Shown here piece by piece: positions 33,392-58,621 of a stretch of DNA of 64,000 nucleotides. Position 1 is the first letter of the stretch; the number at the start of each line of letters is the position of its first letter. The notes beneath the pieces are model-generated. The model did not search any database, was not told the DNA's origin, and worked only from the letters and a program-made list of their open reading frames with translations. A program made the position numbers and the translations under genes. Source of the DNA: Monocercomonoides exilis PA203 (Eukaryota > Protista > Preaxostyla); contig LSRY02000009.1 of the NCBI GenBank assembly GCA_001643675.2, positions 1,550,001 through 1,614,000 of the forward strand. Direction: 5' to 3'.

Positions 33392-35099
33392 ATTTTTTCT
33401 TCTTATTAACCAATACTTGTCTTTTGAAAAGATACAAAGATTTTTCTATAAAATCAGGTTTAACATTGTTTAAGTCATTGTTTTTCTATTTATTTTCAAA
33501 TAATATATGGGATAAAATTTTTGCAGTTATGAAAAAAACTGTGGTTTGTTCCAAACTTTGACTGCAATAATATCATAACAAATTTTTCATTACAATGCAA
33601 AATAAATGCAGAAAATTCTAAAATTGAGAATAATATTTGAAAGTATTGTGCGGAACAGAATTCGTAAAGATAAATATTTTGACCCATATCATTATTAAAT
33701 CAAAAAATATTCTATTTTGTGAATAGAACCACTTTTATTTATTCAATTAATAAAATAGATTTGATAAATTTGAATTTTATAAAATTTTTTTGAATTGACT
33801 GAATCAATTTCGAATTGATCCAATCTTATCTGAAATCAAAATAAACATTTTCTGTGGCGTATTTTATCAAACAAGTTTCGTATTCGATCTGTGTTTTGTT
33901 CATTAATTTTTCATTTTTATCAGCATAATGATATGGGTGATTTTTTTTGATATCATAAAAAATGATCAAAAATCGAAAAAATAAAATCTATTGTGGCATG
34001 TGTTGATCAATGAAAAAATTTGGTTTTTTTGAAAGTCCATAGCTTTTGAAACTGTGATTTATATGTGTTTTATTTATTAATTGAAAAAATCATACCTTTT
34101 TTCGTCTTTAAGAGAAAAGAATATTTATTATCAAGTTTCCCTGAAAAATGGGTGATTCTTTTTGAAAAGTCACAAATGTTTAATTTTCAAATATATCAAA
34201 TAAGCCTGGGTGACTGACTGACTTTGACTTGATAAAAAGTGAAATTTGACTGACGCGATGGAAAAAAATCCCGTCACTAAAATTATATACATTATTTGCT
34301 ATATTTATAATTTCAGAATAATTTCAATTAACTTGATAATATTAAATAAATATTTTTTTAAAAAACGATAGGTTGAAGTTTTCGAAAATATAACTGTTGA
34401 TTATTTAATTAAGGGGAACTGACAGAACTGACGAAGGTGGATAATTTTGATCAAAAAACGTCAATGGAGTCAGTGGCAGGCAGTGGCACCAAAAAATGTT
34501 CAATGGGTGAAGAAAGAATTAAACTGAAAGAAGAATATAAAAACAGCCTGTTTGATATCTTCATCGTTTGATCTTTTTTTTATTCTGACAAATAACAAAT
34601 GACATATTTCAAAACAGACACATTTGAAAAAGTTGTCTGAATTGAAAAAAGTGCACTTCCAATTTGTTTGTCTTGAAAAATGTGAAAACTCAAAATATGT
34701 TTCAGATTTCTTTTGAAATGCAGCTTTTCTGAAGTTGTCGAAGAAGATACAGAAATATTTATTTCGCTTTTTCTTTATTTGGAGATCTGCAAATCGTATC
34801 TTCTGAGCTGTGTCTTGCGTTAAAAACTACACCTTGCAACAAAGCTTGCTGAGAAAGAACCTCTTCGAAAATATTATCCTGAAATAAAAAAGATATTTTT
34901 AATGTCTGCAATCGTTGGAAGCACTACTGCAAGTGTGTTTCTTTTTTTGCAATCCACTTTTTCGTGTATTCATATTTGTAATATTTGTTAATCTGAATAA
35001 ATGAAGAAAACAACGTTTATTTCTATTCTGGTTTCTTTTTTTAAAGATCATGAACATAGCAGTTCACAGTAGTCTCTGATGAAGAGCGTTTTGGAGCAG

Positions 35100-36340
35100 C
35101 GGTTGATTGTGGATGGAGGTGTTATGTGCACCTCCAATATGGAGCTTTCTGCGATGTTTTCAGATCCCCCTGTCACACAGCTACATTTGCTTTCATTATC
35201 GATAAGCAAGAATTTTGGAATCAGATATTAATCCGAAGTGAACTCAATTCCATTGATCTTCTGATGAATTTAACAGATCGTTGCTGCATTCTTCGATTGT
35301 CTCAGTTTTAAATATTTGGTGGTGAAGATTCAAGGCTAAGTTATGGGGCGAGTTGTTGCATTGTGTGAAGTGGGGAAGATTGTGGAGAAGGAGCTGTTGG
35401 TAGCGGGGCTGAGGATGGAGGAAGTGGTTCTGTAGCCAGCAGAAATTGCGCTGGTTGCTCTGGAGGAGCGGGAAGAGGCGGAGGAAGGAGAAAAGGGATA
35501 CAAAGAGGGAGAAGAAAAGGGAGAAGAAGATGGAGGGAGAGAGCGAGGTGATGGAAATGAGGAGAAAGGCGGGTATCCGACAGCACACGGAGAGTTTGTG
35601 GAGAGAATCAAAGAGAACCAGGGAAAGCTGGAAGAAGCGATGGTGCAGCTGGTTGTGGAGGCACAAGGGCTGAGTCGGCTGAGGTTTGTGAAGGCGGAGG
35701 CTGAGGATGAGGCAGGTGCAAGCAGCATTCGATGAAACATGAAGTGTAAAGTGTTTTTTCGGTAGATGGCATCCAACAGGAGAACAGGAGAGCAGAAGAA
35801 GAAGCAGCAGATGGAACTTTGGGCATAACTTCAGATGGAAGCGAAGAAAATGTGGGGAAAGATGTGGAGCAGGTGGAAATTTCAACAAATGATTTGGCAA
35901 CAAATGAGGAGTCAGTGAGAGAGGGTAGTTCGATGGATTTGGAGAAGGAAGAGGAAGAGAAAGAGGAAGAGGAAGAGGAAGAAGTGATAGAAGGACGAGG
36001 AAGAAGAGGAATAAGTTAAGGGGTGTATTTTGGATATTTAATCGCTGCATGAAAGGTTTGAGAGGATGATCGATGAGAATTCGCATGGGAGCTTGCGGGA
36101 CTATCTGGCTACGATGACGGTGACGGGGGTGCTGGTGGAGCTGTGTGCCAAGCAGGAGCGGATTGTGGAGAAGCCTGTTGTGGAAGGGATGATCCAGTCA
36201 GACGTGACGATGATCATCAAGTTTATTGGGGAGAAGCGGTTTGGGAGGATAGAGAAGAAAAGAGAAGGGGGTGGTGGTGGGGGAGGATGTTTGGCATCGG
36301 ATGGTGCATAGCTGCATTTGGAAAACAGATCCAGCAATAA
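35100..36340 (-). pseudogene. Fragmented host-like gene inside the hAT-like element, paralogous to the 59.6-62.5 kb gene
   Basis: SSRSSRATSAISAGYRTTSSIL here vs SSRSSRTSGAIADGYRTTSYVI near 61 kb, with matching nucleotide blocks; broken reading frames. Confidence 0.55.
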
Positions 36341-38443
36341 TCGATGTAATTAAAAGATGAGAAGACGGAAACCAAAGTGAGAATGAAATGAATGAACTTG
36401 ATATAAAGTTAAGTTCAACAAAAAGGAATCAAATATTTTTTGCAAGATGAAAACATTAACGGATTGGACAAAGTTGAAAATACATATGGATTTAATTATT
36501 GTTTTTTTTGAAATCCTTATTTGAAAAAGAATGACAATTGTTCAAGTTATGCTTTTCAAAATAACTTTTTTTTGTATATTTGTTTTCAATTCCTTGTTTC
36601 AATCTCATTTTCAATTTTCATCTCCATTTTTAAAAAAACAAATATGAGAATGTTATAGTTCTTTTGCAAAAGGAAAACAAATGGAATATCAAAGACTTTC
36701 GTTTCCAAATTGAAAATATTGTATTGACAAGACTTGATTTGGAAAAAATGAAAATAATCAACATCAAAAAAAATATATGAATTATTATCATAATATTTGC
36801 ACAATTTAAAATCAATCTTCTGTACCAATCAATAATCTTTTTTTCTTCTTATCTCTGCTGTCTTTTTATCCTTTCACAAATCAAACTTTCAACTCAAATT
36901 TCATGTTCAAATATTTACTTCTTTTCTTTCAATAATTAATCTCTTCAATTCTCTCAACCTTATTCCCATTCATCATGCTCTCTTCATTCTCTAAACTGTC
37001 TTCATTCTCTTTATTCTCTTTATTTTCTTTTCAATTTTCTTCTCGTTTCTGTTCCTGTTTCATTTCTTCAAGTATCTCTTTCTTCGTTTCTCCAACAATC
37101 TCTTGTGAAGACGCAAAATATGAAGAAATTCAATCAAATGGCGTAAATGAAGAAGAAGAAGGAGAAGAAGAAGAAGAAGAAGAAGAAGAAATTGTGCGAT
37201 ATGAAATGACATCTATACATCGGAAGAAGAAGATGATGATGCATGAATTGCACAAGATGATTGGCTGCTGAAAAATGTGAATGCGAATGCTAATAAACAA
37301 AAACCAAAATTTTTTCAGAATTAATCTTTTCCTTCTTTCTTCTTCCATTTTCGTATCTTTTTCTGCCAAATTAGATCCTCCAAATCCTTCAAACATTCAG
37401 CTCTATCATCCCCACTCTCCAACAAAAAATTGGAAACCTATGTAAATCTCATTTTCATTCCATTTCTTTTTATTTTTCTCTTCCCCTTCTTTCATAAAAA
37501 AAATCATCTTTCCTCAAAAATAATTCTTCACCAAAGTACAATGCAAGCCATCTTCGATTTATCTTGAAATTCATCAATATTCATTTCATTTTCTTCCTTG
37601 CTTTTTTTCTTCTTCAAATCCATCTAACCCTTCGCTTTTTAAGTTAGATGAATGAAAAAAAAATTATAATCACTTCTGAAAAAGAAACAACAAACCTTCA
37701 GGGCTTCGCTTAAATCAATATCCATATTTTATTCCGTTTGAACTTGTTTTCTTATAAAAAAATACATTATTCGTAACTTATATAAACCGTTTCAACAACT
37801 TATTCGCTAATCATCTCACCAAATATTTTCATTCTGCACAGTTTCCATTTAAATTCGCTTTTCTTGTTGAATATTCAGCCAAGAAAGAAATGCCCAGCTT
37901 TTTCTCATTTTCGACTATTTCAATCAATGTACTGAAAAAAGCATAAAACCTGTCAATAAACAAATATAAAATTATGTGAATCGAACAACTTTCACAAAAT
38001 GAAAACTTTAACTTGTTAAAAAAAATATTTATTGGCATAAATATCATTAGTATTATGGTCCAAATTTGTGAAATATTGAAAAACGATAAAATTTAGAAAA
38101 CATCATTAAAAACAGTTGAATTAATTTTTTTATGTTCAATTTTCATTTTTTTATTTTCTTTAGGAAAGAAAATCGAATATCAATTCCTTCTCTTATAATT
38201 GAGAACCACGATCTATGGGTAGTCGCCCGTGAGGATCAAGGTTGTGAAATGGTGGAAAATTCTGAAATGCAATCGACAATTTCACAACAACTTAGCCATA
38301 AACCAACAATTGGATAAAAAACGAGCTAACCAACTGAACAAGCGTTATCACATACTTTATTAACGCTAAGAAAAGGAATAAACAAGAACACCATAACTCG
38401 AAACACTTATTTACATGGGTGGGAGTGAAACGGTGGTGGGCCA

Positions 38444-38546
38444 AAGAGAAGGAATTGATATTCGATTTTCTTTCCTAATAAAAGTGCATAAGCACCTTTA
38501 TTGTCAAGAAAATCTTCAATCAATTCCTTCTCTTATAATTGAGAAC
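38444..38546. repeat. DIRS internal complementary region (ICR)
   Basis: The first part is the reverse complement of the left terminus (38160-38194), the second part is the reverse complement of the right terminus, and the two overlap at TAA. Confidence 0.92.
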
Positions 38547-38551
38547 ACAAG

Positions 38552-41500
38552 TTAATTGGGAGATGATGAGACCATCATCAGAACAGCTTTCGTGATCGTC
38601 CTTTGCTTTTCCTCTGATTCCTTCCTTATTTGGGCCCTTGTTCTGATTATGAACTCTTTTACCTGTTCTGGCGGATCTCCTTTTCCTTCACTGGGCTCTT
38701 CAATCCTTGTAGGCCTCATTGGCTGTTCTTCCCCACTTCTTTGTTCTGCATTCTCTCGTTGACAAATAGAGCTATTGGCTTTTGGTTTAGTTGTTTTCTC
38801 ATTTCCGCCTCTCTTCTTTGCTTCGGATCTTCTGTACATGGCTGTGCTGTCTGCATCCTCTCTGTTCGCTCTATCTTCTTGATCGTTTGTTGCAGAGGCA
38901 ATAACGCGGGCCATTGATGATGCTAGGTTTGATCGAAAATAATGTTTGACCAACGTGTTTGTTCGTGGTGACAATCTTGCAAACCTTGCCACTTGTTCTG
39001 GGGGAATTCCTGCCATCGTCAGTGCTGAAAGGCTTGCTGCTTTGATCGAGTATGGTGTGAATCTCTTGGGCACTCCTGCATCATAAATCGCTTCCTTTGC
39101 GAGCTTCCGAATTCCTTCTACAGCTAACGGATGAAAGTTCTCTGTGTTAAGAAGCAATTTGTCTGTGTGACTGTTTTTCTCTTGGACTTTTTTCCACAAT
39201 TCCTGGATCGCTGATGCGGGACAAATCAAACTCAGTTCTGGTAAGAACGGAACAGCAATCTCCGTGCGTGTGTTTGAGGTCTTCAACTTTGTGTCCAAAT
39301 ACACGCCTTCCTCCTCAAACCTGCTTTCCAACATATTGATCCTCTCGAGCTCCGTGAATCTACAAGCTGAAAACAACATCGTTAGAACAATCACTTTCAT
39401 AGTGAGCTGTTTAAAGCTTAACACTTCATTTGGTCCCAGGCCAGAAAAGAAATTAAGCACTATTCGAGGATTCCAAATGTCTCCTGTCCTCTTCTTTCTT
39501 GACTTGTCCGTCCTTCGGAACGATCTAAAAAGGGTACGAATAATAGGGATGTCTCCAAGGAAGGAAGAGAATACAATATTGGAGTAAAGCGATACTGCTG
39601 CCCTTGTCAATTGAAGGCAAGTTAACTTCATGCCACCGTTCCTAAGCGATAGAAACACATTTGCACAACATGCGGCCCACTCTTGAATAGACTCCGGTAT
39701 TCTTCCATGTCCACACTCTCTCCATTGTTTTCCAAAATGAGCAAATCCATACAGATACCCTCGCCATGTGCTCTTGGATATGCCTGCTCTGCACTCTTCT
39801 GCTAACGAGAAAGGGATTGATTTTTGTTCCAATGCATTCTTCCACCATTGTTCCCCATCGCGTAAGGTGCATTCAGCCAGATTATCCTCAATCGACCTGG
39901 TGGAAGACTCGCACCTGTCCATTGCATCGATGGACCCTTCCGCAGAACCTCCTTCTGATTCTTCCAAGTCCATTCCAAATGGGGAATGGACCTTAACAAG
40001 CTCTCCCAATTCTGTCCCTTCCAATTCGGCAGGAGTAATATCACTTGTGCTCTCTCCTGTCGTGCTTTCTGGATCGTCGGAATCACAAGCGGGATCGGTG
40101 GATGAGCTAACACGACTTCGTTCTTCCAGGGAAACATCAGTCCGTCTTCTGCAAGCTGACTTCCTATTCCGCACCATCTTCCCACTTTGCGATTGTGTTG
40201 CGCTGCAAACGCGTCCAGCGTTGGAGCAATGTTTAGTTTCGTCATTATCTTTTCCCATTCTTCGTCCTGCACCTCGTAGTCTCCTGCTCTCTCCAGTCGT
40301 GATAACGCATCTGCTCTTGTGTTCAGTACACCTGGAACATGTGACGCTCTCAACTCTATGCCTAGATCTTGTTTTAGTCTCCATAATTTCCTCAGCACTG
40401 GTCGAAGCTTCTTCCCTGCATTCCATCTGTTTATGTTGAACACCACGGATGTATTGTCCGATCTTAGGTGAAGAAAGGACACGTGATGTTCCTGAAGGAT
40501 TGGTGAGAAGTGGCTCAGAGCAAGAAATACTGCCATTAGTTCCCTGAAATTGGATGATTGCTTTCTCACTCTGTGGGGGAACGGATTGTGCGCATCGAGG
40601 AGCTGGTTGTTCAAGAGGAGCGAAGCTCCCCAAGCCGTCTCCGATGCATCTGTTGTAAGAGTTGCATCCGGGGAAAATACTGGGATAAGTCTGCGTCTTG
40701 GGTGTGCTCTCAACCTCGATATCCATTGCCGAATCTGTTGCAGGATTGACGCATTCAACCTCAATTTGCCTTTCCATCCTCTTTCCTTTATTCCTTTCTG
40801 GAGCATACGATGCATGGAGTGAAGCCATAGAGAAGCGTCTGGCTGAACAAACCGAACAGCATTGAGTTTTCCAATAAAGGAAGCCAGATCTTTCACTTTC
40901 ACAATTCTTGCTTTTACACAATCCTTTTCCCATCTGCGACACAAGCGAGTCAGTGCTTCTTTTCTGTCTCTTGCAAGCCGAACCTTCATCTTCGACGAGT
41001 CCCACTCGAAGCCAAGGAAAGAAAACTTTCTTCTTGGTGTCAACTGGCTTTTCTCCTGGTTCACCAAAAGACCTAATTCCTCCAGAAACCTGATAATCTC
41101 TTTGGCGGCTAGTGCTAAGAATTCCTTGTTCTCGTGTAATATAAGGAAATCGTCCAAATATGCGATTACCCGAACATCCCATCGTTTCCTGATTTCTGAA
41201 GTCACCTTCCTCATCGCGTGCGTGAAAACTCTTGGGGCGTCTACGAAACCAAACGGCATTCCTCTGAATGTGTAGTCTTTTCCAGAAAATCTGAAAGCCA
41301 AATATGGTCTTAGGTCTTTGGATACCGGAAGCAGATAGTAGGCCTGTTGCAAATCCACTGAGACTGCGAAATCTTTTCTTCTCAGCACACGCTCTACTGT
41401 CTTTTCGTTGTCGCATTTGAAGTGCGTCTTTATCAAGGCAGCGTTCAATCTCCGGCAATCCAGTATCTGCCTCCATGCTCCCGATTTCTTTCTGATCAAA

Positions 41501-41857
41501 AACACGTTGTTCCTGTGCCTCACCTCCTCTGACCTTATCTCCTCCACAATTCCTGTCTCTATCTGTTCCTGCAGAAGATCTGCGAACACCTTTCTTTGAT
41601 CTTCGTTTGAGTGAACGGCTCCATCTCTGAACGGCATATCCCTTAGCTTCATTCTCATATGTTTGCTTTTCCACATCGCCTGCACGCCCTGTTTTATCAA
41701 CTTGGCACCACCAATTCTTTCCCAAGCCTCTATGAAAAACTCCGTTCTTCCTCCAATCCTTGTCCTGCCCATGACTCCTTTCCTCGCTCCATCTCCCCTC
41801 TCTATTGTTGACCCCGACTTCGGCTGTAGTATCTCCAGTTCGTTGTGGTCCATCCAT
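38552..41857 (-). CDS. DIRS tyrosine recombinase ORF (YR in the C-terminal ~400 aa; long N-terminal overlap with pol)
   Basis: SAM-like region (STWRGY...RAAVS), IWNP, SACRFTEL, TKLKT, ICPAS, FTPYSIKAAS and LVKHYFR, matching the layout of DIRS YRs. Confidence 0.85.
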   Translation of the reverse strand: MDGPQRTGDTTAEVGVNNREGRWSEERSHGQDKDWRKNGVFHRGLGKNWWCQVDKTGRAGDVEKQTYENEAKGYAVQRWSRSLKRRSKKGVRRSSAGTDRDRNCGGDKVRGGEAQEQRVFDQKEIGSMEADTGLPEIERCLDKDALQMRQRKDSRACAEKKRFRSLSGFATGLLSASGIQRPKTIFGFQIFWKRLHIQRNAVWFRRRPKSFHARDEEGDFRNQETMGCSGNRIFGRFPYITREQGILSTSRQRDYQVSGGIRSFGEPGEKPVDTKKKVFFPWLRVGLVEDEGSACKRQKRSTDSLVSQMGKGLCKSKNCESERSGFLYWKTQCCSVCSARRFSMASLHASYAPERNKGKRMERQIEVECVNPATDSAMDIEVESTPKTQTYPSIFPGCNSYNRCIGDGLGSFAPLEQPAPRCAQSVPPQSEKAIIQFQGTNGSISCSEPLLTNPSGTSRVLSSPKIGQYIRGVQHKQMECREEASTSAEEIMETKTRSRHRVESVTCSRCTEHKSRCVITTGESRRLRGAGRRMGKDNDETKHCSNAGRVCSATQSQSGKMVRNRKSACRRRTDVSLEERSRVSSSTDPACDSDDPESTTGESTSDITPAELEGTELGELVKVHSPFGMDLEESEGGSAEGSIDAMDRCESSTRSIEDNLAECTLRDGEQWWKNALEQKSIPFSLAEECRAGISKSTWRGYLYGFAHFGKQWRECGHGRIPESIQEWAACCANVFLSLRNGGMKLTCLQLTRAAVSLYSNIVFSSFLGDIPIIRTLFRSFRRTDKSRKKRTGDIWNPRIVLNFFSGLGPNEVLSFKQLTMKVIVLTMLFSACRFTELERINMLESRFEEEGVYLDTKLKTSNTRTEIAVPFLPELSLICPASAIQELWKKVQEKNSHTDKLLLNTENFHPLAVEGIRKLAKEAIYDAGVPKRFTPYSIKAASLSALTMAGIPPEQVARFARLSPRTNTLVKHYFRSNLASSMARVIASATNDQEDRANREDADSTAMYRRSEAKKRGGNEKTTKPKANSSICQRENAEQRSGEEQPMRPTRIEEPSEGKGDPPEQVKEFIIRTRAQIRKESEEKQRTITKAVLMMVSSSPN
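39802..41853 (-). CDS. DIRS pol: reverse transcriptase, RNase H and DNA adenine methyltransferase-like domain
   Basis: RT: ILDCRRLN, DLQQAY, MPFG, YLDD, FLG. RNase H: TTDAS..WGA, RELMAV, RSDN, NTRADALSR. MT-like: LDAFA, DGLMFPW, HPPIPL. Confidence 0.95.
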   Translation of the reverse strand: MDHNELEILQPKSGSTIERGDGARKGVMGRTRIGGRTEFFIEAWERIGGAKLIKQGVQAMWKSKHMRMKLRDMPFRDGAVHSNEDQRKVFADLLQEQIETGIVEEIRSEEVRHRNNVFLIRKKSGAWRQILDCRRLNAALIKTHFKCDNEKTVERVLRRKDFAVSVDLQQAYYLLPVSKDLRPYLAFRFSGKDYTFRGMPFGFVDAPRVFTHAMRKVTSEIRKRWDVRVIAYLDDFLILHENKEFLALAAKEIIRFLEELGLLVNQEKSQLTPRRKFSFLGFEWDSSKMKVRLARDRKEALTRLCRRWEKDCVKARIVKVKDLASFIGKLNAVRFVQPDASLWLHSMHRMLQKGIKERGWKGKLRLNASILQQIRQWISRLRAHPRRRLIPVFSPDATLTTDASETAWGASLLLNNQLLDAHNPFPHRVRKQSSNFRELMAVFLALSHFSPILQEHHVSFLHLRSDNTSVVFNINRWNAGKKLRPVLRKLWRLKQDLGIELRASHVPGVLNTRADALSRLERAGDYEVQDEEWEKIMTKLNIAPTLDAFAAQHNRKVGRWCGIGSQLAEDGLMFPWKNEVVLAHPPIPLVIPTIQKARQERAQVILLLPNWKGQNWESLLRSIPHLEWTWKNQKEVLRKGPSMQWTGASLPPGRLRIIWLNAPYAMGNNGGRMHWNKNQSLSR

Positions 41858-42725
41858 CTCTCTGCCGCTTTCCTTCTCGTGTTGCCTGTGAGCGGGGTCC
41901 TCTCCGAAAAAACTGTGAGCCCCAGATCTTTCTTGGGCCAGTGTAATTTCTTCTTGGAAGCCCCTGTGTTGCAGAGCTCCTCTCTCCTTTAGACCATAAG
42001 GAACTTGTTGACTTTCTGCTCGTTACTTTAACGGGGGTTGAGGAGCTTGTCGCCAATCTTGTCTCCTTTAAAATCTGCTCCTGGCGTTCGGTTAATAATC
42101 CCGTCACATTTTCTGATTTCATTTGCTCCGCCATCCGAAAACCAAATCTTCCTTGCAGCCTGGTTGTTCTCGCCTCCTGCAATGCCTTCGCTATAAGCAG
42201 TAACGCGTCAGCTCCCCTTTGTGCACTTTCCCGATGAGGGTCTGAGTCCGCCAAGCTCAGAAGCTGAGCCTTGAAAGCCTGATACAAACACAGCTCTATT
42301 CTATAACCCGCGGAATCCAACGCATCATTAAACCAATTGGCCGATTTTTGGAAGGGGGGAGGCACTGGCTGCAATACTGGGCTTAGATCCTGAAGCGCGT
42401 ATTTTTGTTCAATACTTTCTATTGAAAAGGCAGGAAGTTGAAGATCAAAAATGGATCTATTTGGTTCCTGACCGAAAATGCTATTAAAAACGTCAGCAGC
42501 CCTTTCGTGCAAGTCTGAGTCTGTTTCTTCTTCTGTGCTCTTTTCTTCGGTTGCTCTTGCCGCTGTTTCCGGAGGACTTGATTGAGAAGATACCGACGCA
42601 GAAGAAGGAATTGGTGGAAGGAGCGTTTGGACCCCAAGCTGGCTTTGCACCCCACCTGGCAGTGAGGCTGCTTCGGTTGCCGGTGTAAGTCCAGTTGTCT
42701 GCGGGAAAAATGGTGATTGCATCAT
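41802..42725 (-). CDS. DIRS ORF1 (gag-like)
   Basis: First ATG just inside the 5' terminal repeat; 307 aa ORF in the gag position upstream of pol. Assigned by position only. Confidence 0.75.
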   Translation of the reverse strand: MMQSPFFPQTTGLTPATEAASLPGGVQSQLGVQTLLPPIPSSASVSSQSSPPETAARATEEKSTEEETDSDLHERAADVFNSIFGQEPNRSIFDLQLPAFSIESIEQKYALQDLSPVLQPVPPPFQKSANWFNDALDSAGYRIELCLYQAFKAQLLSLADSDPHRESAQRGADALLLIAKALQEARTTRLQGRFGFRMAEQMKSENVTGLLTERQEQILKETRLATSSSTPVKVTSRKSTSSLWSKGERSSATQGLPRRNYTGPRKIWGSQFFRRGPRSQATREGKRQRDGWTTTNWRYYSRSRGQQ

Positions 42726-42918
42726 TGATCCGATCGTGGCGACTACCCATAGATCGTGGTTCTCAATTATAAGAGAAGGAATTGATTGAAGATTTTCTTG
42801 ACAATAAAGGTGCTTATGCACTTTTATTATCGAGAGATAAAAATTGATTTCACACTGACGAGAAAAAATTCTCCTGACTGACCGAACATTCAATTTTTCA
42901 ATCCGTCACCCAGGCTTA

Positions 42919-43072
42919 ATATCAAAAATTTCATATTTAATTCAAATTTTCGTTTCCACTTTCGAATCTTTTATTGAATGTGTGAAATTGCATTATCCTT
43001 AAATAGATTCCATATTGGTGAAGTTTGGTGTATGCCAACGAAAATTTGAATAAAATATGAAATTTTTGATAT
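42919..43072. mobile_element. ~150 bp MITE; its first bases are duplicated as the TSD of the hAT-like element
   Basis: ATATCAAAAATTTCATATTTAATTCAAATTTTCGTT at the left matches the reverse complement of 43037-43072 with one mismatch; bounded by ATAT. Confidence 0.75.
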
Positions 43073-46000
43073 GGGTCATTATTTTTCATATCGTAACTTT
43101 GTTCGAAGAAAGATCTTTTTTTAAGTAATTGTGGTATAATGAGATAAGAATCAAAAATACATGTTTATAAATAAATAGAAAAAGAATCGCGATCGAATTT
43201 TTGAAAGTCAAGTTAATTTGAGAAAATCATATAAATTCCATTATAACATTTATTTATTGAGTTATTTCTTTTATTTGAATTATTTGATATCACAGAACCC
43301 AACAAGTTTAATTATTGTTTGTATATAATTTAAATTTGAGTGTGATTTAATAGCATAACTTTTTTTGAGATGATTCGTATGAGCTATCATCAGAAAATGA
43401 ATTATTGATTTATTTTTGAAAATTTTAGAGAAATTGATGAATTTTATTTTTTTGTATTGTTATTTATGACTTTATTACAGTTATGAAAGACACTTATTTT
43501 ATTTATAGCATTTTTGATGTTACAAGTGAATTAATGTTTGTCGAATTTTGTTGGAAGGAAATGCGAATAAGAATCAAAAAATGGATAGAAAAATAAACTT
43601 AATAAGGAATATTTTTTATAGATTTTTGAGAGCTAATGAAAGAAAATGATCATTGAGGTTCTAAAATATTTTTGAACTGTTTCTTAAATTTTCAAAGTTT
43701 TCTTCATTTTTCTTTGTATGAAACATTTAACATAACTTTGTTTGTGGAAAAGTTTATTGTTTTTGAGATGTGCACTTCATTTTTCATTGAGAAGAACATT
43801 TATTAATCTGAATTTTCAAGAGATACTTTTTTTTTTGAGAAGTTTGATAGAAGAACTCAAAAAACAAAAAACCTTAATTCGATATATCTGAAAACATAAT
43901 ATTTGCAAAAGTAATTCCAATTTTTCTATTTCTAATGATCAGGGAATGGGGAAATGAAAAGAAATACTGAAAAAGCCAACAAAAAAGGCAATGAAAAACA
44001 AGCGAAATTAATGAAAGCCAAATTGAATCTTTCATATTGATCAGTTTCATTTAATTCATCAACATTAGGCATATTTTTTGGATGAATAATAACATGTCAG
44101 GCAATCACATCATCCTTCAGCGTGCTTTTCTAAATGAAAAACTCAGAAAAGCAGGTGCTGAATTTGACATATTTCGAATTGTCAACACTTTGCCTGAACG
44201 GATCAACAAATAAAATGACAATCCAACAAGCCATCAGAAAAAAATCATTTCAAATAAGATTCTTCTGCTTGTCTCTGATCATTATTGCACTTTATTATCT
44301 CTTGCATTTTTGTCAGAACTCATTCTCCCACCACACTCCATTCCTCTTTTCTTTCAGCCTTGTATCTGCTATTTCTTCTTTTTAACTTTCTTCACTTCCT
44401 CTCTCTCTCTCTCTCTCTCCTCCTTCACCTCTTCCTCCTCCTCTTCTCCATTCTCCTCCTCTTCTTCCACCTTCTCTCTCACTCATCTTCTTTCAGTGCT
44501 TTCTCTTCTTCTTCTTTCTTTTTTTTTGCTCCTTCATCATTCTCGCTTCCTCTTCTTTCCTCTTTCTCTCATCTTCTTGATTCTGCATCTCAATTATTCT
44601 GTCCATCTCCAATTTCTTTTGCCACTCCCTTTCCTCTTTTTCTCTTTGACTCTCCCATTTGTCCTCCTCATATTTCGTTATGAACTGCAGGTTGTCTTGA
44701 AGCACTTTTCTCTTTTCAAGCTTCAGTTGTGCTTCACTGCCTGTTCTCTCGCAATGCGCTACGCCTGGTCTCCTTCTCTGAGGGTGATTTTCTCAAACAC
44801 ATCCTTCGCAACATCAATCGACAAATCAATAATCACCGGCCTTTCTTTCATCTTCTCCTCATCTTTCATCCTTTCCTGGTTAGCGCTCGTCTGCCTCCTT
44901 TCCCAAAGCTCCACATCTTCCTCGTATCGCTCAATGCCCTCCTCTCTTATTCTGAGCTTGTTGAACCAGATGTCCCATCGAGAGAAAAAGACATAGAATT
45001 GGAAGGAGCTGCCTGTGACAAAGTAGTCGGAGCTGGATGCTTCTGCTTCATCAGCCCCTGGTGTCGCATCAGATACGCTTCCCTCATCCGCTTGATGTGC
45101 ATCTGGATGTCTGCTGAATTCTTTGCCTCTGATACTTCAGCCGCGCTCATGTTCTCCTTCTCTTTCTCCTCTTTGCGTGCCTTCTTGCTCCATTTCTGCT
45201 CCAACTCCTTCCGTTTCTCCTCTTTCTCCTTCCTGATTCTCGAATGCGACTTCTCCTCCATCTTGAACGGGCGTGTGAAGAACGGATGAAGCTCCTCGTC
45301 TGACGTGGGAAGGCACGTCACAGACGTCGACGTGCTCGCATTCTGCCCAGCAGCTGATGCTTGCCAATGCGATGCACGTGTTGAAGACAGGTTGTCTTTC
45401 TGGATCAGGCTCAGGCTCTGGTTCAGCTGCACTGCTCCCTCTTCAGCACTTCCTTCGCTCTTCTCTCTGTCGTTCACCGTCATCCCCTATTTTTCGCCTC
45501 TTTCGGTGTCTGTCTGATTGGCTTTGTGGCTGTCCTGCTGTGCTTGTTTCATCGACGGGATTTGATGCTCAATCTCTTCGCTGTTTGTTTCGTCAGCTGG
45601 TAGCATCGCCTTCCGCTGAATGAGCATGTTCAGCTCATCCTGCTTACTTTCCGCCTGCGAATCACTCTCTTCCTCTGAACCCTCTTCTCTTTTTGCTTGT
45701 TTTCGTCTTTTTGAGGCTTTTCAGACGTTTTCTGGCTTCCTTCGCTGCAACTGTCAGACGACGAGGCTTTCTGCCCTGCTTCTTCATTCTCTTTGACTCT
45801 TGCTCCAATTTCGCTTGCGTTCCCTTCTCCTTTCTAAGCTTTCCTTTTCTCCTTCAACATCTCCTTTCTCCTTCTTTCCACCTCTTCTGGTGTGATGCTC
45901 GGATCCAATGTAATGAAAGACGATATCTCTAATGGCTTCCCTCCCGACATCTTCTTCGCCACAGATATTTTGGGCAGCTTTTCCTCTTCTTTCTCCCTTC

Positions 46001-47400
46001 TTTAAATCTCCTGCTGCTCTTTGAACTTCTTCATCACCTAGTCGATCGTCTTCTGCCTAATCGATCTGATTGACGTGGGCTTTGCATTTCCATATCTTCC
46101 TTTCTTCGTCAGAAACTCATTCTTTTTCTTCTCATCCTGCTTCTCCAATCTCTTCTTCTTCTTCTTCTTCTCTTTTCCTTCTGTTCCATTCTCATAAACG
46201 CTGTCATGCATTGAATTCATCTGGCTATCCTTCTTCAAAGCCCTCGATCTATCAACAATTCCTTCAACAGCCACAAAAATCTTTCTTTTTTGCTTTTTCC
46301 ATTTTCTCTTCTTTGCCTTCCTCTTCCCCTTCCTTTTTCCCATCTTCCTCCTCTTCCTCCTCCACCTTCTCTCTCACTCCTCGTCTGCCCCATCCTCCCA
46401 TCTCCTCCAAACGGTCTCCCACACACATTTCCTCCCCTTCCAACCCCTCTCAGCATGATGTTCCAAAACATCCCTCTGCACCTGCTTAACTTAAATGCCA
46501 CCTTCTCATTATCCTTCCCCATCTCCACACCACATCCCTTCACCACAATCACACCCCCCCCACAAACAACACAAACTCCACCCAATTTCATCTTCAAACA
46601 GCTCAATTCCTTCCAACAAAACCGACGTTTTCCTTAATTTCCTCATATTTTTGTTCATCTTCTTCCCTTTTTCTTCAATTCATGTGTGCCAATTGACTGA
46701 AAGCTTACGCTGCAAGATCCTAACATCGCATTTTGAAAATGAAAATGAAAATTGAATTCTTGTTAAAAATCAATAAAAGATGGAAGCCAACTCCTCATAT
46801 TATTTTTGTCCTTCATAAATTTTCATTTTCGTCCATTTTCGTCTCAAGAATTATCGAAAATCCTCAACATAATTTGTTGTCTCCATTAAACATCGAATAA
46901 CATTTGCTGTTTCATTTCTTCGCTTTAATATCTGAAATCTCCCTGAATAGAAATACATCGATCGTAACATTTGAACGTCTAAATAAAAACAATATCATCA
47001 AATTATTTGTTTTGCGTTTTCACACAAAAATGGAAAAAATAAATCAATAATTCATTTTCTGATGATAGCTCATACGAATCATCTCAAAAAAAGTTATGCT
47101 ATTAAATCACACTCAAATTTAAATTATATACAAACAATAATTAAACTTGTTGGGTTCTGTGATATCAAATAATTCAAATAAAAGAAATAACTCAATAAAT
47201 AAATGTTATAATGGAATTTATATGATTTTCTCAAATTAACTTGACTTTCAAAAATTCGATCGCGATTCTTTTTCTATTTATTTATAAACATGTATTTTTG
47301 ATTCTTATCTCATTATACCACAATTACTTAAAAAAAGATCTTTCTTCGAACAAAGTTACGATATGAAAAATAATGACCCATATCAAAAATTTCATATTTT
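43052..47400. mobile_element. Foldback-like unit with ~366 bp inverted repeats (core GGG...CCC element 43073-47379 flanked by ATAT)
   Basis: 43052-43417 is the reverse complement of 47035-47400, with no mismatch seen on reading. Confidence 0.85.
44300..46640 (-). pseudogene. Fragmented charged/coiled-coil host-like gene between the long inverted repeats
   Basis: Coding-like GC content; E/K-rich ORF pieces (44947-45483, 44493-44705, 46038-46343) separated by stops and frameshifts. Confidence 0.45.
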
Positions 47401-47954
47401 GTTCCAAACTTATTCCAGATTCATATAACAATGCACATAACATTATTATGCAAAAAAATATTTGAAACGAAATCCATAATTATTATTAATTTTTATTTTT
47501 GGATACAAGCTCGATATTTGAGGAAATTACCAAAGTTAATGAGTGAAAGGCTATAATTAGAATATTGTTTGAATTATTATATTATTAAAACAGGTATGGA
47601 AGTTTCACTGAATTGTCAATGCTTCTTTTATTGATTTCATATTTACTGTTACAATTTGTGTTTGTTAATGAAAAAGTATGTGGTAAATTTGTTCATTCGA
47701 ACTGAAAATTGGATGAAGACACAATTGCGTGAAGATTTGTTGGATTCTCAAAATTTTCAAGTTGAAATTAAAAGAAGAAGAAAAATCACTGTCTGTATAG
47801 AAATAGCTTCATTTCCACCTTTATCATTATCTTCTTTTTTTCCCTCTTCCTCTTTCTCCAATTCTTTTCACTCCTTTCAAACATATCCGTCTCTCTCCTC
47901 TATCTTATGTGTTTGTTGTTCACTTTTGTTTATTATCACCGAGTAGTCTGCATT

Positions 47955-49075
47955 TTAAATCGTCTTCTCCATCCTCGTCTCAATTTCAGGCATCTCTTTT
48001 TTATCCACACGATTCTTTGCCAAATCAGTCAACTTTGTGATGATTGTATTTGAAGGCATTGGCGTTCTCTTACATGGAGTGGGTGCAGTTGTGGATGCGA
48101 AGAACGACTGGCTCAACAGAAAAATGGAAAGTGCTACTGATGCACTCTTTGGCTGAGGGAAAGATGAAGTGCGCAAAAGCATGGAAGAAGATTGGGCTGT
48201 TGAAGGATGAAATAAAAGACATCAAGAGTGGAAGAATAATGAAATTTAGGTTTAAACAAAAAGGTTTGTTATTTTTTGATTGATTTTGTTTTTTTTAACA
48301 ATTATTTTTAAAAAAGAAATAGCTTTTCGACTTCATTCAATACTCATCCATTTTTCATGCATTGGCGTAGTCATCGCCATCTTCTTTAACTTCTTTCTCT
48401 TCGTCATCTTTGGCATTTTCTTCATCAAAGTTAGCACAACACCTAATCCATCCACTACACTCTCCCAATGCAACACTTCATCAAGCAGCATCATCTGCTT
48501 CTTAGCTTTTGTCTCTTCTCTTCAAGCACACTTCTGCTCCCCTGTCACTTCTCTTATTTCTCCCTGTCTTCCCTCTCTCTGAGATATCTGAATTTACAGA
48601 ATGCTTTTGTTCTTCACGTACCAGTTCAACACTATCATTGGATGTATTTGTGGAGCATGTCTCACTCCATTAAACAGATAAGAAGAACGACAAAATAATA
48701 TAGCTGCTAATTACACTTGCCCATTCAACACAATGAAACATCCTTGCGCTGTTTGCAGTGGGGAAGATGGTGTTTCGGAAAAAGTGTGAGGAGAAAGAGA
48801 AGGAGAAGATAGAGGAAGAGAATTTGATATATTATCCGGAAGAAGAATGGAAGAACGATCGGGTAAAGACTCAATTGAAGGAAGAATAGAGGAAGGATCA
48901 GGAAGAGGGAGAGGAGAAGAAGAAGAAGAGAAGGAGGAGAAGGAGGAATATGAAGATAGTAAGGTTGATTAAATTGTGAAGTGATTTTCTGAAGAAAGAG
49001 GATAAGAAGAAGAAGGAATTCGGGATAAAGAAGAAGAAGGGGAAGGGGAAAAGGGAGAAGAAGAAGAAAATGGAG

Positions 49076-49106
<31 letters not shown>

Positions 49107-52100
49107 CAATTTGAATGAAATGAATCGTCCAGATGGCTTTTTTTCTCATCAGAATAATGAATGAAAAATGAAATGAAGGCGCATTTGGTGAACGGTCGTT
49201 GAGAGGAAGAAATGTGAATGTAATAATTTTTGGACCACATGGCGGCTCTGCCAAATAGAATGACATAAAGGCATTTGAAGGTCGATGCTCTGTTTCAATT
49301 CGAAATGAGATCAAGAAACAAAGAAGAAGGTGAAGAAGCTTGTTGATTCATTGTAGATGCAGAAGAAGAAACTGAAGCGGATGAAGTGCCATCAGTTGAC
49401 AATGAAATCGAAGATGATGGTGATGAAGAAGATGAAGGAAGAGGAGTAAAACTTGAAGGTAGCTGGATTGAAGTGTGAATTGGATAAGCAGAAGGGTCAG
49501 ATGGATGGGGCTCTTGCATTGAAGTGAATGTTGATGGATGAAGTGGTGGGTGCAAAGAAGAAGAAGATGATGAAATCGTTGAAATGATAGAAGATGATGG
49601 AGGATAAGAGGAAGAAGAAGAGGAAACATAAGAAACATCAGGAGTGCCTTGAAAAGCCATTTGAGACATTGGCAATTGAGCAAAAAATCATCTTTCTGTG
49701 GGGCCAATCCAAACTGCTCTGCTAGCTTCTTCATGCTTGTTGCTGACAGCATTTGCTGGATGGCCTTTTCTTGATCTGCTTTTGAGAATTGCATTGGATA
49801 ATTGTTTTTTATCACCACATTATGCATCGATTTGACCATAGCTTCTTGCTCTGGTGTCATCCGTTCAAAATCTAATGGATCTGTTTGTTTTTTCTTTCTA
49901 GGCTTTTTTGGAGTTACCCGATTTTTTTTCGTTTTTCTTTTACGTGCTGCTTTCTTTTTTTGATTCGCCAAAGCTATTTGCTTTGCATCAATACCGTTTT
50001 TTTACGACGAGTTTTTTGCATCGTCGATCAAATTAGACTCATTTTTTTAAGTTTTGAAACTGAGCAGCCGCATTTTGTGACTGCAGAGGATTGAAAAAAA
50101 GAGCATGGGGCGTTTTAGTGAAGTTATTGACATTCACAGTGACCAATGCAGAGGAAGGCATCTGGGGGGACTAGGAGCTTAAAATAGGAGGAGGCTGAGA
50201 AGATAAAGAAGAGAGAGAAGAGAGAGAAGAAGGGGTTGAAGGAACTGAAGAAGGAGTTGTAATAGAAGTGGAAAAAGAAGAAGAAGAAGAAGAAGAAGAA
50301 GAAGAAGATGTTGATATTGGAGTTGATATTGAAGAAGGAGCAGTAAATGACGATGATTGCCGTGAAGGAGAAGCAGATGCTAAAGAAGGAGTTGCAGAAG
50401 GAGCAGGCAAAGAAGAAGCAGAAGTGGAAGAAGATGATGTATTTGTTATAACAACAACAGGAGGGGGAGGGGGAGGAGAAAAAGAAGGAGCTGTAGAAGC
50501 AGGAGTAGCAGGAGTAGCAGAAGGTGAAGAAAGAGAAGGAGAAGCAGGAGCAGGAGCAGAAGCAGGAACAGGAGAAGGAGAAGGAGAAGGAGAAGAAGGA
50601 GGAGAAGGAGAAGAAGGAGAAGCCGAGTTTATGAAAGGGAACGGATGAGACTGAAGGGCAGTTGTCTTTGACGATGAATGGTAGTATGTGGGTGCGCCGT
50701 TCGCCTTCTGAGCAAAGAAGACGATTGAGCCATTGGAGGAAGAAGAGGCAGAGGCAGAGACAGTAACAGAAGAAGGAGAGAAGGATGCGATGGGAGACTG
50801 AGAAGTTGTTGATGATGATGATGATGAAGAGGAAGAAGAGGAGGAAGGAACTGAAGAAGAAGAAGAAGAAGAAGAAGAAGAAGATGATGATGATGATGAA
50901 GGCAAAGAAGTTGCAGAAGAAGAAGGAGCAGCAGAAACAACAGCCCCACCAACCTGTGAACTCAACCCAGAAATCACAGCCAATCCACCCACTGAGTTAG
51001 CATGTGTTGCAGCAGACGCTGCTGAAGCTGCAGAGGCAGCCGAAGCAGCTTTCACAGAAACGGCACCAGAAGAAGCGATCGAAGGCTGAAGAGCCTTTTT
51101 ATTGAGGAGCATGGCAGTGGGGCTGGGGTTGTTGAAGGGGCCTGCATCGAAGTTCTGGTAGCGGTGGGGGTAAGGAGTGGAGGAGATGGGTGGGGTGATG
51201 AAGGTGAATGAAGAAGAAGAAGAAGAAGAAGAGGAGGAGGAAGGAGGAGGAACAGCAGAGGAAGTTGAAGTGACAGGAACAGACAGTGGAGCATTCACAG
51301 GGACAGCAGACATCTGAGGCTGCAAGGCAGAGGAGGAGGAGGAAGAAGAGGAAGAGGAAGAAGAGGAAGAAGCAGCAGAAGCAGCAAAAGCTGGAGAAAA
51401 GCCACATGAAAAAGCAAAAACAGCCTTTTGATTGACAGATGACAGAGGAAAGGGGTAGCCAACGACAGATTGAGCAATGATTTTGTTCTGTTTAGTCAGA
51501 GCAGGCGAGTGAGAGATGGACTGAGCAAGAAGAGCAGCAGGAGAAGAGGCAGACAGAGGAAGAGAGTGTGATTGAGAAGCAGATGCAGAGGAGAGAGGGA
51601 AGGAGGTGATGGAGGAAGTATTGGGATTGACAGAAGAAGAAGAGGAAGAAGAAGAAGAAAGAGAAGAAGAAGAGGAGGAAACAGAAGAAGATACCCATTT
51701 CATTTCACTTCTGTCTAACTCGTCAATGGAGTTGGGGTTTGGCACAGGGCCACTGTTTTTGCAGGAGCGTCTGGGGACAATAGGAAACTTGGCAGAAGAA
51801 GAAGAAGAAGAAGAAGAGGGGGAAGAAGAAGAAGAAGAAGATGATGATGATGACGATGATAATGAAATTGTTTCATTTGAATGAGGAATAAGAGAAGCAT
51901 CAGGAACTTGTGGAAACGAAACAGAAGAAGCAGAAGCAGAAGAAGAAGAAGAAGAAGAAGAAAAAGAAGAAGGAGAAGAGCCAATTCCAGCAATTGCAGG
52001 CGAAGGAGTCGGAGAATTCGAAGGCGGAGAAGACGTCTGATATATTGGAAGCACAACAGGAGGTTGTGTGTGGCAGGTGCGCCGACGATGGCGAGGCTTA

Positions 52101-54400
52101 GAGGAGAAGCTGAATGTGCTGTCAGCATCTTCTTCTTCCTCTTCTTCTTCGCCTTTGTTTTCTTCTTCCTCTTCCTCTTCCTCTTCATCTTCTTCGTTTT
52201 CTTCATCATCGTCTTCATCTTCTTCTTCATCTCCATATCCTTCTTCTACTCTTCTGCCATCAATTTCACTTGTGCTTTTTCTTTTCCTTCCCCTTTTCCC
52301 TTTTCTCCCTTTTCTTCTTTTTCTTTCTTCTTCCTCTTCTTCATTATCATAAACCTCTTCCTCGTCTTCTTCGATTTCTTCTCCTCCATTTTCATCTGGA
52401 ACAATAAATGGATGAGAAAAGGAAGAGGAAGAGGAAGAAGAGGAAGAAAAGGAAGAAGAGGATGATAAAGAAGAAGAAGAAGAAATTATTTGTGAAGAAT
52501 TATCAGCTTACTTCTGTTTAGAGTCACTTGATGATTCCGACTCTTGTTTTGCTTTCTCATTCTTTGCTGTTCTTTCCTTTTGTCCAGCCTTCTTCTTCTT
52601 CTTCTTCTTCTTCTTCTCTCTTCTTCATTTTCTCTTCTTTCTCCTTCCTCGCATTCTCTCCTCTTTCCACATACCTTTCATACTCTTCAGCAGCGCCTGG
52701 CGTTATGTCTTCATACACTTTTGCTGCAAGGGCATTCAGCCGCTGATAAGTGCTTGTGCAACCCAAATGAGGATGAAGAGAAAGAGAACGAGAAGAGGAG
52801 GAAGAGGAACAACAACAAGAAGAAGGAGGAGGAGATGATGATGTTGTTGATGATGAAGCACTTGAGGAATGAGAGTGTTTCTGCTGTGCCACCATTTGTT
52901 GACTAACAATTGCTGTCTCAGTTGTTTCTTTGGCCGCATCTGGCGAGCAGATGAATGCTTTCTCAGTGAGGATGACATTGGCATCACACACCTCCGTCAG
53001 CAGCCGAAAGACCGACGATAGCAGCGCCTCGTCTCTCGGCGCATGGAACAGGAGCATCTTTGCGGTGTTGGATGCTCTCAGCAGAAGAGAGGCAGACTTC
53101 TCCTTCACCGTCACTGCACGCACCAAGGCAGACAGTGCTTGAGCAGCCGATGCGAGGACAACAGGAGACGAGTTGTGCATCACAGATAAGAGGAGCGCTT
53201 CGTGCACTCCCCGCACAACAAGTCCCAGACGCTCAGAAGGCGTTGTGAAGGAGGACACTTTGTATCTCATCGACGACAGCTGTGCTGCTGCAATAGAAGA
53301 TGCCATTTCTTTCTCTCCTTTTTTGTTTCGCTGCAGTCTGCTGTCTTGTTGAGAAGAAGGAAGATGCGAAAGAGAAGAAGGAGAAGAAGAAGAGGAGGAA
53401 GGAGAGGAAGGAGAGGAAGGAGAGGAAGGAGTGGGAAGATGGAAATGACATCAGCGAAAAGTGTGTCAACTGCTGGTAACACCACAAACACCACAATACA
53501 AAGCATGTCGGCTGCCGCTGTGTGCAGTGTGCATTAATCGACATCACTCCAAAAGACAGGCAATGCTGCATTTCCTTCTCGTCCTGATCCATTGCGCTAT
53601 CTGGATGCACTTTCTGAGCCTGCGAAAGCTGTCAACACATCCACACATTCCCTTTCACATTTTCAGTCTTCTTCTATCTCTCCTGTATAGCTTTCATCAC
53701 CGGTGTCTCTAATGTCTCCAGTGTCGCCTGTGTCGTTGCGCTCTCCTCCGTTTTCTCCTTCGTCTTTATCACAGGCATCATCAATTCCATCCACTGCTGT
53801 TCTGAGCGCATCTCATTATTTCTATTCCTCTATTTTTTCCCTCATTCGTCTCCTATGTAATCTTCATCTTCTTCGTTTTCTTTTGCTGTCACTGCTTTTT
53901 CTCCATATCTTCTTCTTCGGGCTTCCCTTTTAAATCATCATCTTCTTCATGGTCTTTCTCTTCCTCATCTTCTTCTCCCTCAACTCTTGCCTTCTAGCAC
54001 CTGTCCATCTTCCTCGACAGATTCTCAGCCGCAGTGCAGCTGAAAATCTTTAATCTCTCTTTCGTGCTCTACTCAGATTATCAGTCCCAATTTCTGTTGT
54101 TGTATCGACCAATACTCGTTTCAATGCCCATCTCATCCTTCTCACCAGTGAAGCTGCCTCCTTGTTTTGTGCTGTTGTGACGAATTACTCAGCAGACTCG
54201 CTCTCTTCTCACATCTATGCTAATGAAACTGAGAATAGCAATAGAAATTGTGAAGATAATAGAAGTCCTTATGCAAGTGATAATAAAGGTGGATCAAGTG
54301 ATTCTGCAAATAGCGGAAAAAGCAACAACAACAGCATTGAAAGCAGTGGGAGAGGAATAGGAGTGGGAATGGGGAATGAACAAGACATCTTCTGTTAACA
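47955..54400 (-). pseudogene. Long Ser-rich low-complexity gene(s) broken into fragments, including a HEAT-like segment
   Basis: Consecutive minus-strand fragments (52557-53306, 50171-52054, 49348-49971, 49295-49675) in shifting frames. The segment SFTTPSERLG...HEALLLSV...QALSALVRAV resembles HEATR6-type HEAT repeats (tentative). Confidence 0.45.
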
Positions 54401-54789
54401 ATCTTCTGGTGATTCTTTGCAGGCTAGTGCAATTTTGTCTGAAGAACAGCAAGATTCTTGTAAGAATTTAACAATCGAGAAAATATACAAACTTGAGAAA
54501 TAATAATCTTTAATCGACACTCATTTTTGATAAATAAAACGCATTATTAAATTTTTGTTTTTAATCTTTTGATTGACATTTCAGAAAAACATCATTCATG
54601 AACATGCAAATCTTTTTATCTCGAACATTAAAAAAAGAGGACAAATGAATTATTCAAAGATGAATGAAGTGAAAAGACAAAAAAAAAAAATAATCAATAA
54701 ACTATTTTTTTATTCTAACACGAACAAACAATTCTTCTATTATTAACAAAAAATTTTCCCCAAATTCCCCCTTGTTAATGTAACAGCGC

Positions 54790-56638: not shown

Positions 56639-56776
56639 AAAAAAATAAAGAAGATAAAAACAATGAAGAAAAAAATAAAGAAGATAAAAACAATGAAGAA
56701 AAAAATAAAGAAGATAAAAACAATGAAGAAAAAAATAAAGAAGATAAAAACAATGAAGAAAAAAATAAAGAAGATA
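56639..56776 (+). repeat. 30-bp minisatellite, about 4.5 copies
   Basis: AAAAATAAAGAAGATAAAAACAATGAAGAA repeated exactly; reads KNKEDKNNEE in the transposase frame. Confidence 0.9.
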
Positions 56777-57829: not shown

Positions 57830-57878
57830 ATTATTTATTTTTTTATTTTATTATTTATTTATTTATTTTTTTATTTTT

Positions 57879-57965
<87 letters not shown>

Positions 57966-58586: not shown

Positions 58587-58621
<35 letters not shown>

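Follow-up and report, generated by a model that had tools for sequence, protein, structure and literature searches.

What arrangement of insertions produced the dense cluster of transposable elements (TEs) in a 64,000-nucleotide stretch of the oxymonad Monocercomonoides exilis PA203 (hereafter the window; positions 1,550,001-1,614,000 of contig LSRY02000009.1, our C91), and can they be taken apart base by base? We addressed this by reading the junctions in the window and by searching the assembly (82,301,135 bp, 101 contigs) for further copies of each element. An initial annotation had described a linear stack of four layers: a DIRS element inside a hAT-like element, this inside a ~150-bp MITE (miniature inverted-repeat transposable element), and this inside the end of an outer element, of which a second, uninterrupted end was thought to lie at 59031-59096. 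Two of these layers were misread, and a second nest made of two further elements, Y and Z (43073-59053), was overlooked. The locus very probably represents a single MITE, here called M, that was hit twice independently and now bears two three-deep nests: M contains the hAT-like element, which contains the DIRS1-like retrotransposon, and M also contains Y, which contains Z. Together the two separate nests spread the 240 bp of M (34150-59096) over ~25 kb.

The split MITE M

M is found in three pieces, delimited as follows (a strand is given where one applies).

34146-34149: AAAT, left copy of the target site duplication (TSD) of M, directly before GGGTGATTC; its counterpart, AAAT at 59097-59100, stands after the right arm
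34150-34200, plus strand: M piece 1, made up of the left arm (GGGTGATTC...TTTTCAAAT, followed by ATAT) and the first 4 nt of the core; collinear with 15 copies
42927-43072, plus strand: M piece 2, the remaining core up to the ATAT duplicated by Y; located between M arms in 29/29 nearest relatives
59050-59053: ATAT, right copy of the TSD of Y (left copy at 43069-43072), itself sequence of M; in M copies L001 and L004 the sequence at this place is TTTTTGATATATTTGAAAA
59054-59096, plus strand: M piece 3 (right arm), reverse-complementary to 34150-34192 without a mismatch and bordered by AAAT (59097-59100)

Joined end to end, the segments 34150-34200, 42927-43072 and 59054-59096 give 240 bp that align with the 15 genome copies at 84-90% identity and with 0 gaps. 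The reconstructed element has a perfect terminal inverted repeat (TIR) of 63/63 nt, GGG..CCC ends and AAAT on both sides, and positions 34150 and 59096 are best read as the two ends of one MITE. A first look at the genome returned 908 candidates for the arm GGGTGATTC...TTTTCAAAT, often as plus/minus pairs about 245 bp apart. In all nine arm copies that were fetched, the arm is directly followed by the core (ATCAAAAATTTCATATTT...) and then by the inverted arm. Likewise, M copies L001, L003, L008 and L009 read ...CAAATATATCAAAAATTTC unbroken at the place where the hAT-like element sits in the window. The 4-bp TSDs of nine other M copies follow the pattern A-N-N-T, being AAAT, ATAT, ATTT or ACAT. 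At 33935-33990, 215 bp upstream of M, a related family has a terminus, GGGTGATTTTTTTTGATATC, with ATAT before it.

The two nests

The first nest consists of the hAT-like element (34201-42918, with an 8-bp TSD) inside M and the DIRS1-like element (38163-42829) inside the hAT-like element.

34193-34200: ATATCAAA, left 8-bp TSD of the hAT-like element, sequence of M; exact copy of the right TSD
34201-42918, plus strand: hAT-like non-autonomous element, 4,051 bp of own sequence, split by the DIRS1-like element; 14-bp TIR TAAGCCTGGGTGAC
38160-38162: TTA, left junction of the DIRS1-like element and putative crossover trinucleotide; TTA stands before GGAAAG in 10/11 copies
38163-42829, minus strand: DIRS1-like retrotransposon, 4,667 bp, with reverse transcriptase (RT), inverted terminal repeats (ITRs) and an internal complementary region (ICR); its genes lie on the minus strand
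42919-42926: ATATCAAA, right 8-bp TSD of the hAT-like element; exact copy of the left TSD

The TIR of the hAT-like element is perfect over 14 nt (TAAGCCTGGGTGAC at 34201 and its complement at 42905-42918) and 90% identical over 21 nt. Its terminus occurs 41 times in the genome, versus twice for the reversed control, and this excess, together with the at least 11 copies of the DIRS family, indicates that the layers of the nest are not due to chance. The 8-mers adjoining the termini all differ, and a second perfect pair, ATTTAACA, surrounds a 4.7-kb copy at C80:362197-366888; the 8 bp are therefore a real TSD and not sequence of the element. hAT transposons prefer the target nTnnnnAn. Counted over the 41 termini, roughly half to two-thirds of the 8-mers have T at position 2, and a like share has A at position 7, a composition that would loosely fit this target. 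It is the length of the TSD and the TIRs that suggest the label hAT-like, non-autonomous.

The element nested within it shows the organization of a DIRS1-like retrotransposon. TTA is found at both of its ends (38160-38162 and 42827-42829), its ITRs (38166-38227 and 42738-42799) are 62 nt long with 94% complementarity, and in its ICR (38444-38546) the reverse-complemented left end is joined to the reverse-complemented right end, with one TAA shared. Three frames are open on the minus strand, at 41802-42893, at 39802-41853 (RT/RNase H) and at 38552-41857 (putative tyrosine recombinase, at the C-terminus). RVT_1 matches the second of these with E=2e-28 and 100 bits, and its RNase H match is weak. 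Phage_integrase matches residues 818-959 of the third with E=4e-5 and 23.9 bits, below the Pfam cut-off of 27.1 bits. For the methyltransferase domain, no Pfam model matched in the element, and no search was made beyond Pfam. The frame of the putative recombinase (1,101 aa) shares ~2 kb with that of the RT (683 aa), the two being read in different frames; a "long ORF overlap" (ORF, open reading frame) is reported for about half of DIRS1-like elements (PMC3266345).

We compared the junctions of the window element with those of ten further genome copies, whose right ends were read from ITR matches. The junction within the ICR reads CTTTTA-TTA-GGAAAG in all of them. At the left genomic junction TTA precedes GGAAAG in 10 of 11 copies, and at the right junction CTTTTA is followed by TTA (four copies), TTG (six) or TTT (one); only TT is common to both junctions across copies, the third base on the left belonging to the element. 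According to the model proposed for DIRS1-like elements, a 3-bp circular junction recombines with a matching genomic trinucleotide and no TSD is made (PMC3266345). By its distribution among the copies, TTA is best interpreted as this 3-bp crossover and not as a TSD. Thus, the initial annotation was right to keep one TTA in the excised locus, which gives the correct empty site; its reading of TTA as a TSD does not hold, as the trinucleotide is largely fixed element sequence.

The left flanks of the DIRS copies are T-rich, with TTTT within the 6 nt before TTA in 8 of 11, and resemble the CTTTTA end of the element itself. This likeness may explain why the T-rich end of the hAT-like element was the landing site. 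The insertion looks recent, as four other copies have the same terminal 100 nt and all three frames are open. The flanks of DIRS copies L079/L091 (C12:290163-294059) and L086 (C37:972553) are 73-80% identical to the interior of the hAT-like element (about positions 3000-3500), an interior that is itself a dispersed repeat and has been struck by DIRS more than once.

The second nest consists of Y (43073-47379), located at an ATAT of M, and the 11.6-kb Z (about 47397-59030) inside Y; the copy of Y in the window is called Y1.

43073-47379, plus strand: Y1, 4,307 bp, terminus GGGTCATTATTTTTCATAT, TIRs of about 354 nt, no recognisable transposase
47361-47383: ATATGAAAAATAATGACCCATAT, left copy of a 23-nt direct repeat, composed of the ATAT inside the right end of Y, the last 15 nt of Y and ATAT; identical to 59031-59053
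47365-47396, plus strand: patch of 32 nt in place of the first ~35 nt of Z, a mirror of the left end of Y1 and its left flank
47397-59030, plus strand: Z, 11.6 kb, without its left terminus; right terminus ...AAAAATTTTTCCCC
59031-59034: ATAT, right TSD copy of Z, corresponding to positions 16-19 of the right end of Y
59035-59049, minus strand: the original last 15 nt of Y, severed by Z; with 59031-59034, the reverse complement of GGGTCATTATTTTTCATAT

The Y terminus GGGTCATTATTTTTCATAT has 43 exact matches in the genome, mostly plus/minus pairs 4-5 kb apart. Of 16 other complete Y copies, 14 carry a direct 4-bp TSD, mostly ATAT, and the flanks differ between copies. In the window a third Y terminus is present at 59031-59049, followed by ATAT, the right arm of M (ATTTGAAAATTAAAC...GAATCACCC) and AAAT. 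Furthermore, Z (47380-59030) has a match along its full length at C80:209641-227336, with 95-96% identity, and partial matches at several other loci. Canonical Z copies start with ATAT followed by GGGG(A/C)AAAATTTTTT... and end with ...AAAAATTTTTCCCC followed by ATAT, which places the right end of Z at 59030 and its TSD, ATAT at 59031-59034, within the terminus of Y. Two other readings of this half were tried and rejected. A single 16-kb element at 43073-59049 is incompatible with the complete Y end at 47361-47379 and with 47397-59030 being a separate family with GGGG termini. The asymmetric ends of Z had also suggested a Helitron; canonical Z copies have TIRs and ATAT TSDs.

M, Y and Z have in common GGG..CCC ends and 4-bp TSDs of the AWWT type (Y copies, ATAT, ATTT and AGTT; Z copies, ATAT; M copies as given above). 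Sola2 elements of dictyostelids are known for AWWT TSDs, with ATAT, AAAT and ATTT named (Bao & Jurka 2013, PMC3627910), and the pattern of TSDs and termini suggests that M, Y and Z are Sola2-like. The ORFs of Y and Z had no Pfam match, Pfam holding no Sola model. A word search with the Z ORF at 56983-57969 gave no match, and in an Atlas feature search the neighbors of this ORF, scoring 0.94-0.96, were DUF7869 and unnamed eukaryotic clusters.

Several features of Y and Z copies were recorded in passing. The Y copy L024 (C15:432901-438100) has two right termini 270 bp apart (positions 4730 and 5000 of the locus), each followed by ATAT, which suggests a duplicated or nested end. Within Z, long purine-rich or Glu/Ser-rich low-complexity frames occupy 48700-53600 of the window, for example a 627-aa ORF at 50171-52054. 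The minus-strand ORF 52557-53306 has a weak match to DUF4042 (HEAT-repeat-like; E=9e-5, below cut-off) and may be a piece of a captured host gene. The stretches 56592-56846 and 57833-57967 hold a 15/30-nt tandem array (AGAAAAAAATAAAGAAGATAAAAACAATGA) and a run of (ATTT)n. In the C80 copy of Z the array is enlarged to 120 nt at the position matching 56637-56827 of the window, and an extra ~4.9 kb separates the two large matching blocks.

The left junction between Y and Z is non-canonical: the last 15 nt of Y are followed by ATAT and then by CAAAAATTTCATA. Beyond the terminus, the two flanks of Y1 are reverse-complementary to each other at 21/21 nt, which yields the 23-nt direct repeat 47361-47383 / 59031-59053. 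We infer from this one locus an arm-to-arm repair. A break at the left end of Z would have been mended by the broken Y arm priming on the other arm of Y, to which it has 354 nt of inverted homology. Copying would then have run through the Y terminus into the flank, and the end would have rejoined Z at a common TTTTG(TTCC). Such a repair would have restored a full right end of Y with a mirrored left flank, removed the first ~35 nt of Z and created the 23-nt direct repeat. Indirect support comes from a Y-family copy with the terminus GGGTCATTTTTTTTCATAT (L026, C80:1138737-1144946), whose flanks are exactly mirrored over at least 194 nt; they look like coding sequence, and the 4-bp "TSD" is inverted (ATTT/AAAT), not direct. 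Either flanking DNA was duplicated here in inverted orientation, or this copy inserted into the middle of a palindrome. In 15 other Y copies only the palindromic TSD, 4-5 nt, is mirrored.

The order of events can be proposed from these boundaries. M would have inserted first, at AAAT, as an ordinary MITE of ~240 bp. A non-autonomous hAT-like element of ~4 kb would have entered M 51 nt from its left end, duplicating ATATCAAA, and the DIRS1-like retrotransposon would later have recombined into this element, 89 nt from its right end, via the 3-bp circular junction TTA and with no true duplication. In the other half of M, the 4.3-kb Y, a relative of M with long TIRs, would have entered 43 nt from the right end and duplicated ATAT; the 11.6-kb relative Z would then have entered the ATAT at positions 16-19 of the right terminal repeat of Y. 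Without Y and Z, the sequence of M is predicted to read ...GAAATTTTTGATATATTTGAAAATT...

Competing explanations of the locus

At the base level the first description of the locus proved accurate. The boundaries it gave, TTA, ATATCAAA and ATAT are all present (junctions read directly, motifs located by script), and the placement of the DIRS element inside the hAT-like element inside an element of the MITE family is base-exact, each excision restoring sensible host sequence. When the three excisions were run in silico, they left 66 nt (GGGTGATTC...CATAT) identical to the reverse complement of 59031-59096, exactly as had been claimed. This match favors the linear stack of four layers, in which an independent ~150-bp MITE with an ATAT TSD interrupts an outer element whose second end copy lies at 59031-59096. 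The core also has its own inverted ends of 32-36 nt (unit 42919-43072), and in the window the unit of 142-150 bp (34197-34200 plus 42927-43068) is bordered by ATAT. Nevertheless, a genome search with a 142-bp core query found the core enclosed by both M arms in 29 of its 29 best matches (81-90% identity) and never without them, and the junction of arm and core in these matches usually reads CAAATAAATCAAAAA (AAAT) rather than ...ATAT.... The presumed inserted MITE is the core of the host MITE M, and the tetranucleotide taken for its TSD belongs to the family sequence, fixed though with slight variation and usually AAAT; this is what the initial annotation itself had named as speaking against its reading. 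The supposed uninterrupted end fares no better, as 59031-59096 is composed of the right arm of M and the terminal 19 nt of Y. The 21 nt past the arm are ATAT plus the Y-family terminus GGGTCATTATTTTTCATAT, and the resulting junction (arm, ATAT, GGGTCATT) is unique in the genome. The 66-nt match arises because M has a perfect 63-nt TIR, ATAT is palindromic and the 19-nt termini of Y are identical. With the complete Y1 at 43073-47379 also left out of account, the linear stack is highly improbable.

Perfect inverted-repeat ends and a matching AAAT TSD would also be expected if 34150 and 59096 were the ends of one cargo-carrying or autonomous GGG..CCC element of ~25 kb. This we find scarcely credible: the interior resolves into the hAT-like, DIRS1-like, Y and Z elements, each with its own TSD or junction, the remainder is a gap-free canonical MITE of 240 bp, and the composite junctions are present in no other genome copy. 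A mis-join of the assembly inside the multi-copy Y or Z repeats, bringing together M halves from different loci, is improbable too. It would be facilitated by the ~20 near-identical copies of Y and the several of Z, by Oxford Nanopore Technologies (ONT) reads whose N50 of 8.9 kb (PMC8767320) is shorter than Z, and it agrees with the finding that no listed read contig bridges a junction. The two halves, however, fit perfectly: their TIR is 63/63 nt, they belong to one subfamily, their breaks are complementary at a single ATAT, and they share the AAAT TSD. Moreover, the short Logan contigs on 42700-47600 (four runs of one sample, probably that of the assembly) cover all bins and contain no joints or skipped forms. 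The inner consistency of the two M halves argues against a mis-join.

Several observations weigh against parts of the reconstruction as one MITE with two nests. AAAT is a common target of M (about 3 of 9 copies), so that matching flanks alone are only weak evidence. Two other candidate pairs of hAT-like termini have unlike 8-mers, the ORFs of the window hAT-like copy contain no Pfam domain, a transposase included, and none of the 41 genomic matches to PF05699, the hAT-dimerisation domain, lies between paired hAT-like termini. An uninterrupted hAT-like copy with the predicted empty site of the DIRS element had no genome match with up to 3 mismatches, a search that is uninformative given the heterogeneous interior of the family. 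The lack of a bridging contig among the Logan contigs listed for 42700-47600, whose loose ends stem from further copies of Y and Z, gives no verdict on the assembly. Finally, the arm-to-arm repair is drawn from a single locus, and the insertion of Y1 into a pre-existing palindrome is an alternative to it. The reading of one MITE with two nests is the one we retain.

Landing sites and known systems

The insertions described here had prompted the idea that TE ends attract, or else tolerate, further insertions. The behavior of Y is in line with it, and that of the DIRS copies is not. Of 20 Y loci, four lie inside or abut an M-like MITE (the window, C30, C32 and C73), where M-like sequence covers 0.7% of a 131 kb control made of the DIRS flanks and the rest of the window, a control that is small and non-random; at this control rate, the probability of finding at least 4 of 20 Y loci in M-like MITEs is about 1e-5. 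Furthermore, at C46:268539-268568 a different GGG..CCC element (end GGGACGAAATT...) is inserted at the same ATAT as Z, positions 16-19 of the Y terminus, making this ATAT a possible recurrent target. No end preference was seen for DIRS, as judged from the C12 and C37 copies, which by homology to the window copy lie in the interiors of hAT-related repeats, 0.7-1 kb from an end. Any insertion into a 240-bp MITE falls within 120 nt of an end by construction. A preference of MITEs for nesting in MITEs has long been known, as far as the work of Jiang & Wessler 2001 is outlined in PMC5172404.

In this genome, long-TIR GGG..CCC (Sola2-like) elements may favor related MITEs and, within each other's terminal repeats, a recurrent ATAT at 16-19 nt, and their arms may be copied onto each other by break repair that can run past the termini and overwrite neighboring sequence, which would give mirrored flanks of 21 nt in the window and of at least 194 nt at C80:1138737-1144946. 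We offer this only as a speculative proposal, and a rather doubtful one. If true, MITE arms would act as nesting hot spots and also give rise to inverted duplications nearby. That Y is enriched in M-like MITEs, that an ATAT inside the Y terminus recurs as a target and that flanks are mirrored are testable leads on how long-TIR transposons choose their targets and are repaired, none of them surprising in kind.

The nest is real and base-exact, but ordinary in kind. The value of the locus lies mostly in a correction, and it provides a clean, fully resolvable case of a 240-bp MITE inflated to 25 kb. It also illustrates that TIR symmetry combined with a palindromic TSD can mimic an "independent reference copy". 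The boundaries, TSDs and termini of M, Y, Z and the hAT-like and DIRS1-like elements can be used for repeat curation, which is useful because, of the 46% of the M. exilis ONT assembly that is repeats, most (~35% of the assembly) is unclassified (PMC8767320).

Compared with the DIRS1-like elements described by Piednoel et al. 2011 (PMC3266345), the window element likewise has ITRs, an ICR that pairs with the two termini and overlaps by 3 bp, RT/RNase H and overlapping long ORFs, and joins at a matching trinucleotide without a TSD. Those elements encode a tyrosine recombinase, and the window element has a putative one, matched below the cut-off. In contrast to them, its trinucleotide is TAA/TTA, where the commonest published one is NTT, only TT is common to both junctions, with the third base varying on one side, and its host is a metamonad, a group in which the presence of DIRS1 was held to be uncertain.

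The elements M, Y and Z resemble Sola2 (PMC3627910) in their AT-rich 4-bp TSDs (ATAT, AAAT and ATTT), in their TIRs and in the occurrence of chimeric or large elements with common ends and different insides. Their kinship with Sola2 is suggested by the pattern of TSDs and termini, and no Sola2 transposase came out of the Pfam, word and Atlas searches given above.

The locus as a whole recalls the nested multimers of MITEs and other TEs (Jiang & Wessler 2001), to the extent that PMC5172404 outlines them, in that small MITEs serve as landing pads and the independent insertions can be un-nested base by base from their TSDs. It differs from what is outlined there in its host, an oxymonad with Sola2-like, hAT-like and DIRS1-like elements, and in its architecture, a 240-bp host MITE bearing two three-deep nests that total 25 kb.

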